From positions 8,866,001-8,930,000 of the forward strand of contig NC_058382.1 of NCBI RefSeq assembly GCF_018350175.1: 64,000 nt of DNA. Direction: 5' to 3'. Every line of letters starts with the position of its first letter. Position 1 is the first letter of the stretch. The notes under the pieces were generated by a model that saw only the letters and a list, made by a program, of their open reading frames with translations, was not told where the DNA came from and ran no database searches. Positions 9,281 to 47,895 of this stretch are shown here, in pieces. Origin of the DNA: Felis catus (taxonomy: Eukaryota). The position numbers and the translations under genes are program-made.

Positions 9281-9694
9281 CGCGGTTTCAGTTTTTATGG
9301 TGGTTTGATTCTTGATGTAGAAAAGGAGAGAGAGACCTTCCAGGACCCATAGGTCTGAGCCCCAGGTTCTTAGTATTGGCCCTAGGCCTCTTTCTTCTAG
9401 AACCCTGGCATCGAGCCCCTCAGCTATGGAGAGAAGGAGGAGAAGGGAGTGAGTAAAGTGTGGAACTCTGGCCAGGGAGACACCCCAGGGCCTCCTGGGA
9501 GTCGTAGTCCTGCGGCTAGAAAGGGCCACTTCCCAATTCCGTGGCTTGACACCAAATATTCCAAAAGATCCCAGGCATCTAGCCGAAGCCTGGGTTCAGA
9601 AACTCGGGGACGAGAGGAAGCTGAAGGCCAGATGCCCTCGCCTGAGCTGACCAGATGAAACTTCTAGTCTGAGAAGGAGGCCTCTTGGCGATTT

Positions 9695-9910
9695 CCTGGA
9701 ACCATAGGCGGAGCCTTCCTTTGTTGCCGTCCAATCGGACTCAGAGTTGGGTTTGTGGGCGGGGCCAAGGAAACTCCTGGGCGTGTCTCCAGGGAAGTCG
9801 CGCCCCCACGTCCGAAGCTAGAAGGGGGAGGCTGTGGGAATTCCTTGTAGATCGGGGGAAACGGTGACTCGGACTCCAGTCACAAAGCTCTCCACATCAC
9901 GTGACCAACC
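9695..9910 (+). promoter_or_regulatory. IZUMO1 promoter block (CCAAT 9731-9735, GC box, TCACGTGA 9897-9904), repeated at ~14160-14370, 18780-18995, 33740-33965, 38550-38770, 43235-43465; absent before copy 4
   Basis: Conserved 'gttgccgtccaatc..actcagagttgggtttgtgggcggggcc' and 'tcacgtga' in six units. Confidence 0.65.
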
Positions 9911-10247
9911 TCACCTTCGCCCCAGAAACGTCCTCAATTTTAGCCGTGGCAAATAAAGTGGAAGGACGTGACCTGCTCGTCCCCTCTAAAGGCCCTCAGC
10001 CTGGATTCGGCCCTTCAGCGAACTCTAGTATTCCAGGGTGCAACATTCAAGGTCAAGGTCGGGCAGCGGCTGTCTAGGGTGCATCGGGACTCCGGACTCC
10101 TCGGTTTCCTAACCGAGAAGGGGGAGCCCTGCAAATTGGGGGGTCTTACTCTCGGGGAAGGGGTTCTTTCCCGTTACTGATCACCCCTTCCGTGTGGGGT
10201 GGGAGGACCCTCCCCGGGTTCTGTGCGGGCTGAGCGCTGTGGCCGCA

Positions 10248-13200
10248 ATGGGTCCCCAAGTAGCCCTCCTGGTGGCGGCGCTAGCCGGCTGCCTGCTTCC
10301 TGCCGGGGGCTGTGTCATATGTGATCAGAGGGTCGTGGCCGCGCTGGACGCCTTGGAAAAGGAATACCTGCCTACCCACATGGCGCGCGAGCGTCAGGGA
10401 CAAGTGATGGAAACGATAAGACAAACCGTGAGAAATTTCTGGGACCTGCCATATTTAGAGGATGCCTTTATGGGGGTTATAGGTGAGGGCAGGGTAGAGC
10501 GTGGGAACCCCGGGTCGTGGAAAAAGAGGAGTCTGGTGCTAGGATTCCTGGGAGCAGGGGCGGGGTGGGGGGAGGGAGGGAAGGGCCGGAGCCAGAGTCT
10601 ACTGGGTTCGTGATGGAGAGGGCTGAGATGCAGATTCCAGGGCTTTCCGAGCCCTAGGAAATACTGTGTTCTACCCCTTACCCTGCAATTTTATGTAAAA
10701 AACTACAACTCCCAGAAGGCAACAGACAGGCAACCCTTTACAGCCCTAGCCTTGCCCAGTAGCCACATGGGCATTGTAGTTTTTAACACTAGCTGAGCCA
10801 ATGGGACCACAAGGCTTCGAATCTGAGGTTCTATCTCCCCTCCCCGCATCCCCCGTGTCCCTCCAGATGAGGCCACAATGGAAACGTCAGTGTTGGGTTT
10901 TCTGAGGAGTATGACACTTATCACAAACAGTGACATAGCAGGTAAATGGCAGAGTGGCCAGGGGAGGGGCTTCGGAATCCTTTGGCTCTGGAGCCAAACT
11001 GCCTAGGTTCAAACACCGGCCCTGTCATCCCCTGGCTGTGTGGCCTTTAGGGAGGGATGTCACGGCTTTGTCACCTCCAAACTGGGTCATAACGGTGCCT
11101 GCACCCAGGCCAGTGACTTAGCCCAGTGGCCAGCATGGTTAAGTGGTCATCCAATTTCACTGCCCCTCCCGGAGATGGCCCTAACCTGGAACGCCAGCCT
11201 CTTCAGACGGGTACCTGTACCTCCTCCTGGGGTGGGTGGGGGGAGGGGTCGCACTCTGTCACCCTGCTCTTTCCCAGATGACACTTTCGTGAAGGAGTTC
11301 TCCTGGATGTTGACTCTGGAAAAGGCGGCCTTTCAGCGCAATGTTGCTCGGTTCCAAAGAGAGGGTGAGGGAAGATGGGGTCCCTCAGGGACCACAGCCC
11401 CTTCCTCCACCACTCCCGGGGTCCCTGTCCCCAGTCCCCTGCTTCTCTGTGTCCAGCCCCTCGCCTCTCCCAACAGGGTCCTCCCTCCAACCCAAGAGCC
11501 CAAACCCCAACCTATTCCTTCTCCCCCTCTCTCGTGTCCTTTAACTTAGAAATCTCATAACTTTTTTTTTTTTCTTCCTTCTGAGGCAGATTTCTGTCCC
11601 AACAAATGTGGTGAGTCCAGATTAGGGAAGCTGGTGTTCTATCCCCCATTCTGGCCCCGGTTAATACCCAGCCTTTCTCCTCCTGCTTTGGGTCTCGATG
11701 GTTCTTCCTTCCCCACGTCTGAGAGGTTCCTGGTCCCCAGTGGTCCTTCTGCACAGCGGATTTCCTGGACAGCGGGTCCTATTGCATGTGGGCTCCTCGC
11801 TGAGCCCGGTTAGATCCCTCTTCCCGCAGGTCTGCCTTCTAGCCCCGCCCCTTGGGCTGACCTCTCGGGATTAGGCGCTGGGCCCCGCCCCAGCCCTTGA
11901 CCCTGCCCTCTCCTTTCAGTCTCTTCTATCGGGATAAATGCAACCTTGATCCTGCCCCTTCAGGTATGATGTTGCAGCCTCTGATCTGGTGCAGTAATTG
12001 TAAAAAGCAGCTTCACGTTTGTCGCAAGTCCACAGATTGCGGTGGTGAGAGAGCTGGGGCCGGCTGGGGGGGGGGGGGGGGAGGGGCGGGGTTGGCGCAA
12101 GAGGGGCGGAGCCAGAGGAGAGCCGGGGTCTAGAGAGGCCAAAGAAAGGAGCCGGCCCACCAGAAAAGTGGGGGCCAAGACCAAGTGCGAGGGAGTTGGG
12201 GGAGAACCAAGACGCATCCCACCGTAACCGCCTGTCCCCAGTGCGCCACATCAACGTCCACGGAAAGGAAGACTTGGTCCTGGACTGTGAGCTCCACTGG
12301 CATAAGTTATCTCAAGGCCTGACCTATTACAGCTTTTACAGGGTGGGCCCTCCAACCCCATCAACCCCACGTCCATTAGGCTTGGTTGAGCGCCCACCCC
12401 GGTATCCACGAGCTTGTTCCCACAATCCCCATGACCCATGACCTACAAGGTTTGACTTCTACAGGTCCCCGGGGACCCCATGCCCTTACCAGTGACCCTG
12501 GACTCCCATCTCCCCCACTGAGAGCCCGTGATGCCCTCACACCTGTACTGCCCCAAACCCTGAACTCCCCAGGCCTCTGTGACCCCTTGAGCTTGGGTCT
12601 AGGTTTGGGGGAGCAATTCTGAGACCTTGGTGTACAAGGGGAAACAGCCCACCCTGACCAAGCCCCTGGTGGGGCCAGAGGATGCAGGTGACTACCGCTG
12701 TGAGTTGGGCACCGTGAGATCCCTCCCAGCCACGGTCATCCATTTTAAAGTCACAGGTCAGAGCTGGGGAGTTGACGGAAGTGTGGGAATCAGGGTCCTG
12801 GGGTTAGGGGACAGTCAGCTTGGGGCATGGCCTATGGGGCAAAACTTCCTGTCGGGGTGTCATTTCAGGCCACGGGGGTGTGGCCACCCGCCACGGTGGC
12901 CGGGGTCCAGGCAGATAGGGTCGCGATTGTCTCCTCCAAGGCCCGGGTCTTGGGGGAAGGTTGGAGGGGAGGGAGCTTGCCTGGGCCACGGGGGACCTTG
13001 GTGGCCTCCCAAGGCTGTTCTTTCTCTCTCCTCTATCAGTGTTGCCTCAAAGAATCATTGAGGAGACACCGACATCAAACTTTGAAACCGAGGAGCAGCT
13101 GTCCCCAACCCTCCCGCCTTCAGAGCACCCTAAGCCCGAGAAGGTGCTGAGAAGCCTTCTGGTAGGGCTGCTGATCTGGGGCTTTGTGGTGCTGATCATC

Positions 13201-46700: not shown

Positions 46701-47287
46701 AAAAGAGTCATTGAGGAGATCCCGAAATCAAAGCCCGGGACCCAGTATCAGCGGTTTCGATCCCTCAAGCCGTCAGAGTGTCCGAATCCCAAGGACGCGC
46801 TGAGAGGCTTTCTGTTGGAGATGCTGATCTGGGGCTTTGTGTTTCTGATCCTCGGCTTTGCCACCTCGTGAGCCGCCTCCCGGAGAAGGCGGGGCTTGGG
46901 GCGAGGGGCGGGGTCTCCAACGTCCGAAGGTAGGAGGGGGCGTTAGGGGGAGGGGCTTAGAAAAGAGGGGCGTGCTTACCCAGGGCGGCGAAGCTTGGGT
47001 CACAGAAAGGATCAGATATAGGGAGGCTGGGAGGGGTGTCCCTCACTCAGGACCTAACCTGCTTACACGATTGCACCCCACCCTTCCCCAGCGTACTTTG
47101 CTTTAGGTCTGGGACCCTGATCGATTCGGTCAAGTCCTGGGTCCGTACCGACAAGGCAGCAGCCCCCGAGGACCAGGGTCCACAAAGTCGGCTGTCACAG
47201 ACCCAGCTATCACAGACCCAGGTGTCACAGACCCAGCTTCCCAAGGTACCGAACGAGGAAAAGGCCACAGCACCAAGGCTTAAATAA
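43779..47287 (+). pseudogene. IZUMO1: IZUMO1 copy 7, recent pseudogene or null allele; exons 43779-44013, 44440-44514, 44897-44983, 45255-45275, 45628-45708, 45894-45994, 46246-46399, 46693-46867, 47092-47287
   Basis: Single nonsense TGG>TAG at codon 113 (44923-44925); otherwise open; 5' part resembles copy 5 and 3' part resembles copy 2. Confidence 0.85.
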
Positions 47288-47399
47288 AGATTTATCTGGT
47301 TGTCTAAATATCGGATTCCTTTTCTCCGGTCAGATTCTCAGTTTTGGCTTCCCGAGAGGAGAGCTCTGGGGCGGGTCTCCTGTCCTCGGAGAGACTGGG

Positions 47400-47686
47400 A
47401 AGTCAGTTCCCTGTGTCAAGGCAGTGCCCAACTAGCTGAGATGTAATTCCAGAATCAAGGAGTAGAGAAGGGCCTGCCCTACGCAGATCTCCTCCCCCAG
47501 GCCCGGTCCCCTCACAGGACGCCCCCTCCCAGCTCTTCCTGCCGGGTTTCCTCTCGCCTTTTCCTGTCCCCCACCCAGTGCTGGGAGCCGGGGCAGAGGC
47601 AAAGGCTGAACGGGAACAGCGGGGTCAGGAACCAACCAGGGCCAACGGAGCCAGGGCCCCGGGGTGCTGTTGGGACCTGAAGCAGG
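47400..47686 (+). promoter_or_regulatory. Probable RASIP1 promoter and non-coding exon 1 (donor AGG|GTAAGA at 47686/47687)
   Basis: Lies between the IZUMO1 polyA signal (47283-47288) and the acceptor (47890-47891) of the ATG-containing RASIP1 exon; strong donor. Confidence 0.65.
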
Positions 47687-47895
47687 GTAAGAACCGCGGA
47701 GCCAGGAGTCCAGACCCCTCCTCCCTCAGACCCAGTGGCCAGTCCCCACCCATCTCCCATCCCAGCACCCAGGAGCTTAGCTCCCATCCGTCTCCTCCAC
47801 CCAGACTCGCGAGTTTGAGCCCCAGGCCCCTCCATCCCCAACCCCACTACTCGGGGCCTCAGGAGTTGGGGTCTTACCCATCCTTCCTTAGGGCC

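Follow-up and report, generated by a model that had tools for sequence, protein, structure and literature searches.

The IZUMO1 locus of Felis catus is probably an old tandem multigene family with two classes of intact copy, kept by selection in the presence of active gene conversion. To our knowledge, IZUMO1 and JUNO are the sole pair of sperm-egg receptors with a demonstrated essential role in mammals, and they are treated as one gene against one gene. The locus was analyzed in a window of 64,000 nucleotides (nt) of cat DNA (NC_058382.1, 8,866,001-8,930,000, forward strand), and all positions given here count from the first letter of that window. It holds seven IZUMO1 units: five are intact genes, two are dead, and three of the intact genes have replaced residues that contact JUNO. 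The units fall into five orthology groups, four of which also include hyaenid or meerkat proteins.

Gene models of the seven units

The seven units lie head-to-tail on the + strand with a period of ~4.6 kb, in register over ~9.6-47.5 kb of the window (repeat finder). Their start-to-start spacings are 4.46-4.85 kb, and the single exception, a 10.3 kb gap between units 3 and 4, is due to an AT-rich spacer. Exons were mapped by placing felid IZUMO1-like proteins onto the window with tblastn, followed by a seven-way alignment of each exon and its flanks. Joined coding sequences were assembled in scripts for translation, alignment, and distance counts, whereas searches and fold comparisons used single ORFs of the window or the database proteins that equal units 1 and 6. 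Units 1, 2, 3, 5, and 6 each splice into nine coding exons with open frames of 353, 374, 355, 368, and 405 amino acids (aa), respectively, and every one of the 16 splice dinucleotides in each copy conforms to GT-AG.

Ten ectodomain cysteines (22, 25, 135, 139, 149, 152, 159, 165, 182, and 233) are kept in these five copies, in unit 7, and in every full-length ortholog aligned. By hydropathy scan, each intact copy has two hydrophobic segments, one toward the N terminus and one toward the C terminus, which corresponds to a type I topology, and residues 319-358 are helical in the AlphaFold model of unit 6. The exon open reading frames (ORFs) of unit 1 match the Pfam families IZUMO (PF15005) and Izumo-Ig (PF16706), and both are present in the precomputed Pfam annotation of the proteins identical to units 1 and 6 and of all orthologs. 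An AATAAA stands in the same place 3′ of the stop codon in all seven units, and the 600-nt upstream region is 78-98% identical among units 1-3 and 5-7.

An initial annotation of this DNA had described seven head-to-tail IZUMO1 units, on which the repeat finder and the seven-way exon alignment agree. The lengths that it gave for the five open copies were reproduced exactly by spliced translation, and the ten cysteines, signal peptide, and transmembrane segment that it assigned to them are borne out by the alignment and by the two hydrophobic segments. It had also called copies 4 and 7 disabled, which holds for both: unit 4 lacks a promoter and bears four or more disabling lesions, and unit 7 has one TGG>TAG change.

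Unit 1 is the copy treated as felid IZUMO1 in the literature. The best orthologs of unit 2, in jaguarundi and cheetah, have 94% identity over summed tblastn matches and up to 97% over aligned columns. Unit 3 is 100% identical to cat XP_044902972.1 over shared columns, and unit 5 has 368-aa orthologs with 94-96% identity in four Panthera species, Neofelis, and Prionailurus. Unit 6 is the most derived intact copy and contains a 21-nt repeat in stalk exon 8 (3.5 copies) and a 15-nt repeat in the tail (4.4 copies).

Exon 4 is a 21-nt micro-exon encoding C135 and C139 (e.g., 11590-11610 and 16142-16162); in units 4 and 6, it is lengthened to 27 nt by the use of a different acceptor (40504-40530 in unit 6). 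Several RefSeq isoforms, including a 346-aa form, skip exon 4 and are thus without these two of the ten cysteines. The 21-nt repeat of stalk exon 8 (7 aa, Ser/Thr/Pro-rich) occurs at 41990-42063 and from 32490, and the 15-nt repeat of the tail exon (5 aa, LSQxQ-like) occurs at 18083-18130, 47191-47238, 42503-42568, and 32988-33053. The copy number of both repeats differs among paralogs.

Unit 4 has no ATG, an upstream region unrelated to that of the other units, and a +1 insertion in exon 1, and its promoter and the first ~43 nt of its exon 1 are replaced by the AT-rich spacer. Its further lesions are W148C, a 7-nt deletion in exon 5, and an in-frame TAG in exon 7. From intron 8 to exon 9, units 4 and 6 share 99.5% identity, a sign of recent conversion between the two. 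A cat 'IZUMO1-like' protein deposited in GenBank by direct submission (WMV02795.1, 405 aa) differs from unit 6 by H124R, N174H, K176T, and T352I, and R124, H174, and I352 are the states of pseudogene unit 4. WMV02795.1 may be a segregating allele created by conversion from this pseudogene.

Unit 7 is a mosaic of units 5 and 2: it matches unit 5 with 98% identity in the upstream region and with 1 difference over the 310 nt of exons 1-2, and its exons 3-9 differ from unit 2 at 6 of 809 nt. It is a recent pseudogene or a null allele. Across felids, the unit 7 type is represented by a 374-aa model in clouded leopard (Neofelis), a model with a LOW QUALITY flag in Lynx canadensis, and the nonsense codon in cat.

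Orthology groups and age of the family

Most pairs of cat paralogs have an intron divergence of K ~0.25, with a coding dN of 0.14-0.27 and dS of 0.19-0.36. Comparisons with other species rest on proteins. Every unit has its own closer orthologs in other felids, with 86-98% identity by tblastn. In a protein search, several distinct IZUMO1-like proteins came from striped hyaena, spotted hyaena, and meerkat, and non-feliform species had proteins named 'IZUMO1' only.

A maximum-likelihood tree was rooted on non-carnivores, and each caniform species sampled was represented by one protein. The feliform copies are all united in a clade (100/100) that has a long stem (0.42) and is sister to caniform IZUMO1. 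This clade contains five orthology groups: A (unit 1), B (units 2 and 7), C (unit 3), D (unit 5), and E (unit 6). Group C unites felids with Crocuta and Suricata (99/100), and group E unites felids with Crocuta (100/99). Groups A and B also contain hyaenid and meerkat proteins, with weaker support. A constrained topology with a felid-only clade of all felid copies was rejected (delta lnL 142, p-AU 0.004).

Hyaenid and meerkat proteins stand inside the cat groups, and the protein tree therefore places the duplications, and with them the family, before Felidae separated from Hyaenidae and Herpestidae. Carnivoran timetrees, from which the date is taken and not from this analysis, place that split ~30-40 million years ago. 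The initial annotation had regarded the array as a trait of a felid-like lineage, a view contradicted by the nesting of hyaenid and meerkat proteins in the cat groups and by the rejection of the felid-only clade. Its description of a birth-and-death multigene family was apt. The paralogs are diverged, two are pseudogenes, copy states vary by species, and conversion tracts are present; orthology groups common to several species and lineage-specific losses complete the picture of a birth-and-death tandem family.

Contact residues, gene conversion, and retention

W148 is the classical key residue of the JUNO contact of IZUMO1. In human IZUMO1, the substitutions E71A, H157A, and R160A raise the dissociation constant for JUNO (PMC12381214). 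The contact residues were aligned in 55 sequences, including 11 caniform and outgroup proteins. E71, W148, H157, and R160 are invariant in these 11 proteins and in groups A and B, with the exception of one odd snow-leopard model, and units 1, 2, and 7 have this ancestral set. Units 3, 5, and 6 keep W148 and R160 and lack the complete set of four: all three carry H157Y, and units 3 and 6 carry E71Q.

All aligned members of groups C, D, and E carry H157Y, including the non-felid members of group C, save the Crocuta group E protein, which is altered to Y, K, and P at positions 148, 157, and 160. Position 71 is Q or K in most members of groups C and E, position 150 is group-specific (H in group C and D in group E), and some group C proteins carry R160Q. 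One Panthera uncia protein (P0036, 374 aa) groups with unit 2 overall, yet has the unit 6-type contacts Q71, D150, and Y157; either its gene model is chimeric or it arose by conversion.

Outside feliforms, 143 ectodomain sites show a conservation of 90% or more, and fixed changes were counted at these sites. The counts are 25 for each of groups A and B, mostly common to every group, 38 for group D, and 49 for group E. The conserved sites changed in the derived groups include hinge positions 147, 155, and 156, as well as W113. Codon 113 is also the site of the stop in unit 7. The stalks of the derived copies, which are Ser/Thr/Pro-rich and stem from the 21-nt (7-aa) repeat, span 52-63 aa versus 30-32 aa.

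The stalk and tail are disordered in the AlphaFold model of unit 6, whose ectodomain has a pLDDT (predicted local distance difference test) of 80-95. Among PDB structures, the model fits human and mouse IZUMO1 best, with a target-normalized TM-score (template modeling score) of 0.82-0.92 (Foldseek), and the protein matches PDB sequences with an E-value of 3e-68 over residues 22-262 (phmmer). The most derived copy is thus predicted to retain the IZUMO1 fold of helix bundle, hinge, and immunoglobulin (Ig) domain. By descent and fold, units 3, 5, and 6 are IZUMO1-type proteins and candidate JUNO ligands only.

Units 3 and 6 differ by 0-8% in the upstream region, the signal-peptide codons, and much of introns 1, 2, and 5, and by 15-38% in the mature-coding parts of exons 1, 3, and 5. 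Overall, their mature exons are 22.3% and their non-coding DNA 14.1% different; locally, the values are 19.9% for exons 1-3 and 6.7% for introns 1-2. The synonymous difference is also high (pS 0.31). The exon excess includes synonymous sites and therefore resembles older exons in homogenized non-coding DNA more than just fast amino-acid change. Because Fisher tests of exons versus introns ignore the patchiness of conversion, a circular-shift test of the exon mask was added, and no shift reached the excess observed between units 3 and 6. The control pair, unit 4 versus unit 6, has no exon excess outside the replaced exon 1. The most economical reading, suggested by this one strong pair, is that conversions entering mature-coding exons were removed by selection.

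Primate X-linked red/green opsins are a known case in which conversion homogenizes introns and selection keeps exon differences. Units 3 and 6 resemble them in that their non-coding DNA is far more alike than their coding exons, synonymous sites included. They differ from the opsins in gene class, in that the pattern is strong in a single cat pair, and in that selection is deduced here from the pattern itself.

In the proposed history, an ancestral unit with ~0.6 kb of upstream region, nine coding exons, and an AATAAA would have been duplicated repeatedly before the split of Felidae from Hyaenidae and Herpestidae, giving at least five orthology groups. Five cat members are complete type I proteins with a signal peptide, four-helix bundle, hinge, Ig domain, stalk, transmembrane segment, and tail. 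Unit 4 is long dead and without its promoter, and unit 7 is stopped by its single nonsense codon. Units 1 and 2 retain the ancestral contacts, and units 3, 5, and 6 show fixed group-specific replacements and lengthened stalks. Conversion has made the promoter, signal peptide, and introns of units 3 and 6 alike but not their mature-coding exons, and selection would hold the copies intact and distinct. The copies would be spermatid-expressed acrosomal membrane proteins, with units 1 and 2 as classical JUNO ligands and units 3, 5, and 6 having an altered JUNO affinity or specificity or another role in the fusion complex.

A more tentative extension of this history is multi-ligand fertilization in feliforms. 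Groups C, D, and E, conserved from a time when cats, hyaenas, and mongooses had not yet diverged, would be sperm-surface proteins that could have shifted in JUNO affinity or specificity, have another egg partner, or serve in a decoy or assembly role, with selection protecting their coding differences against conversion. Subfunctionalization, in which all intact copies bind JUNO alike and differ in timing, dosage, stalk length, or tail signaling, is rather doubtful; the array would in that case serve dosage or regulation instead of providing a set of specificities. Subfunctionalization agrees with the retention of the fold, of W148, and mostly of R160 in all groups, and with the placement of the largest length differences in stalk and tail; JUNO is moreover reported to be a conserved single four-exon locus with no positive selection in felids (bioRxiv 10.1101/2022.03.22.485370). 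However, H157 and E71 are experimentally validated determinants of affinity, and their replacements are group-specific, conserved across species, and accompanied by changes at hinge positions 147, 155, and 156. The upstream regions, which are 78-98% alike, also provide no obvious basis for different regulation.

Retention of the open copies was compared with a neutral simulation that models substitutions only, uses half the typical paralog distance, and scores the start codon, the frame, and the 16 splice dinucleotides. A simulated neutral gene stays intact in 1-2 of 10,000 trials (probability 1-2e-4). Five copies are intact in cat despite this neutral expectation, and same-length orthologs are widespread in felids, with 405-aa orthologs of the unit 6 type in Lynx and Neofelis. 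Among units 1, 2, 3, and 5, mature-coding exons diverge less than non-coding DNA in five of six pairs and equally in the pair of units 2 and 3. Unit 4 is an example of the decay that occurs in an unconstrained copy.

Two annotated IZUMO1-like loci of the cat are expressed in testis. LOC101085336, which includes XP_006941089 (the unit 1 gene), has a base mean of 613 and is 3.8-fold up in adult versus late-juvenile testis, and the IZUMO1-like locus LOC101085591 has a base mean of 370 and is 5.1-fold up (PMC8611880 supplement).

It is unlikely, and less probable than subfunctionalization, that unit 1 alone is functional and that the other open copies are near-neutral relics, transcribed or silent, whose frames survive by chance or because conversion from unit 1 repairs them repeatedly. 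Gene conversion is clearly active, dN/dS among paralogs is 0.6-1.0, and the exon divergence of unit 6 equals or exceeds its non-coding divergence, as such relics would have it. Chance retention nevertheless has a probability of 1-2e-4 per copy even with indels ignored, and conversion repair from unit 1 would wipe out group-specific differences, yet these are kept across felids, hyaenids, and meerkat. The ten cysteines, splice sites, upstream region, and poly(A) signal are also kept in five copies, and the second IZUMO1-like locus is testis-expressed and rises at maturity. Although tandem arrays are prone to assembly error, it is extremely improbable that the array is an artefact of haplotypes or collapsed repeats laid in tandem over a real locus of one or two copies, because the units differ by ~25% in introns and by 14-27% at non-synonymous sites, far above allelic variation, and each has its own orthologs in independent assemblies of at least ten felids, two hyaenas, and meerkat; the only N run of the window (56400-56539) also falls outside the array.

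Several points count against an old multigene family kept by selection. Pairwise paralog dN/dS of 0.6-1.0 does not by itself separate relaxed constraint from diversifying selection, although high dN/dS is usual for IZUMO1. The dN/dS above 1 in the Ig domain of unit 6 rests on few sites, and no positive selection is claimed. The contrast between exons and non-coding DNA is strong in the pair of units 3 and 6 only, and the shift test of units 2 and 6 gives P 0.053. Gnomon models in other species can be chimeric over adjoining units, and conversion can distort trees. The testis values are given per locus of an older annotation, not per unit (PMC8611880).

Flanking DNA, known systems, and significance

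The coordinates of the units and of their flanking features are given in Table 1. The upstream FUT1-type ORF has a mechanical length of 491 aa, and its GT11 domain begins at residue 172. Its true start is probably an internal ATG, with the N-terminal 130-170 residues being upstream read-through and not protein. In a Pfam search of the downstream ORFs for RASIP1, most had no match, and a single sub-threshold DIL match was the only one returned. The cat gene table gives the order BCAT2, two IZUMO1-like loci, and RASIP1 (PMC8611880 supplement), and together with the DIL match this order is consistent with RASIP1 as the downstream neighbor. The array thus lies between FUT1 and RASIP1, as had been proposed at the outset; the upstream bound is set by the GT11 ORF, and the downstream bound by the sub-threshold DIL match and the published order only.

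Table 1. Position, strand, and character of the IZUMO1 units and neighboring features in the cat window.
Feature	Position	Strand	Remarks
Unit 1 (group A), intact, 353 aa	10248..13561	+	Identical to XP_006941089.3
Unit 1, exons 1-5	10248-10482, 10867-10941, 11278-11364, 11590-11610, 11964-12044	+	Exon alignment
Unit 1, exons 6-9	12242-12342, 12603-12756, 13040-13214, 13429-13561	+	Exon alignment
Unit 2 (group B), intact, 374 aa	14706..18179	+	Ancestral JUNO-contact residues; 15-nt (5-aa) tandem repeat in cytoplasmic tail
Unit 3 (group C), intact, 355 aa	19362..22647	+	E71Q, S150H, H157Y, W113E; longer Ser/Thr/Pro-rich stalk
Unit 4, pseudogene, closest to unit 6	29659..33106	+	Exon alignment
Unit 5 (group D), intact, 368 aa	34282..37861	+	H157Y, W113K, E71 kept; long stalk
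Unit 6 (group E), intact, 405 aa	39136..42621	+	E71Q, S150D, H157Y, W113A; identical to XP_023101450.2
Unit 7, dead	43779..47287	+	TGG>TAG at codon 113 (44923-44925); otherwise open over 374 codons
FUT1-type alpha-1,2-fucosyltransferase ORF, upstream flank	5400..6875	+	Pfam PF01531 (GT11), E 1.5e-126, residues 172-479
Exon-sized ORF, downstream flank, fits RASIP1	59755..60114	+	DIL PF01843, E 4e-4, 20.8 bits, under the 24-bit cut-off
AT-rich spacer between units 3 and 4	23300..29600	.	GC 39-47%, ~6 kb, three SINE-like 186-nt copies

The spacer between units 3 and 4 contains no IZUMO1 remnants and, by Pfam search of its ORFs, no recognizable ORF. A dispersed repeat of ~187 nt with 61-89% identity is present both within and outside the array (217-403, 1130-1316, 25554-25740, 28933-29119, 49878-50064, 53577-53763, and 55545-55731) and is probably a short interspersed nuclear element (SINE). 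At gathering score, Rfam matches the window once, at a tRNA-like element between FUT1 and unit 1 (7903-7987, - strand, 39.6 bits), which could be either a tRNA gene or the head of a carnivore SINE derived from a tRNA.

The cat units share with human and mouse IZUMO1 (PDB 5F4E, 5JK9, and 5B5K) the position at FUT1/RASIP1, the Pfam domains, the ten cysteines, the fold, and the topology, and units 1 and 2 also keep E71, W148, H157, and R160. Unlike human and mouse IZUMO1, which is single-copy, the cat locus has seven units; three intact ones carry H157Y, two of these also with E71Q/K, and the derived units have a repeat-expanded Ser/Thr/Pro stalk and variable tails. Within the IZUMO1-4 family, duplication of Izumo-domain genes has likewise produced members that act in sperm. 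IZUMO2-4 differ from the cat copies, which are IZUMO1-type and at one locus, in being ancient, on other chromosomes, and without the IZUMO1 hinge and JUNO binding. Abalone lysin/sp18 and ZP genes also combine duplication with rapid divergence of gamete-recognition proteins, and the expansions reviewed with them include no tandem IZUMO1 array (PMC8830517).

The cat genes are already present in RefSeq as 'IZUMO1-like' models, two of which match units 1 and 6 residue for residue. These entries give names only and are silent on orthology groups, age, pseudogenes, contact classes, and conversion; what is new is therefore the description and the interpretation and not the gene models. The initial annotation knew of no description of such an array. 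This stands insofar as a full-text literature search, with subscription papers outside its reach, found no paper describing a tandem IZUMO1 array, but it does not extend to the genes, which were already named 'IZUMO1-like' in RefSeq and, for the unit 6 type, deposited in GenBank. A review of fertilization-gene duplication treats IZUMO1 as one member of a four-gene IZUMO family with no tandem array (PMC8830517), and Grayson 2015 likewise treats it as one member of a four-gene family. A preprint on gamete proteins in Carnivora reports one IZUMO1 per species, of the unit 1 type, and mentions no duplication; its jaguar IZUMO1 has 346 aa and a hinge numbering offset by 7, with residues that match the unit 1 type (bioRxiv 10.1101/2022.03.22.485370). 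New here are the arrangement of the family into orthology groups and its age, the catalog of lesions in the two dead copies, the two contact-residue classes, and the exon-sparing conversion.

Studies of carnivoran IZUMO1 evolution assume one gene, and the Carnivora preprint covers the unit 1 type only (bioRxiv 10.1101/2022.03.22.485370). Antibody-based IZUMO1 assays in wild felids (PMC11011130) may detect several paralogs together, and felid contraception or assisted reproduction aimed at IZUMO1 would have to consider all copies. The five intact cat genes are a natural experiment on the hinge and helix-bundle residues that matter for JUNO binding. The initial annotation also put forward a repertoire of sperm-surface ligand variants that may bear on species specificity, hybridization, or cryptic female choice, for which the evidence is indirect: the lasting retention of intact genes, the group-specific changes at contact residues, and the testis expression of two loci in data given per locus. 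In cat-like carnivores, several sperm ligands may do the work that one does in other mammals, and the array raises the question of whether one conserved receptor can serve several ligands in a mammal.

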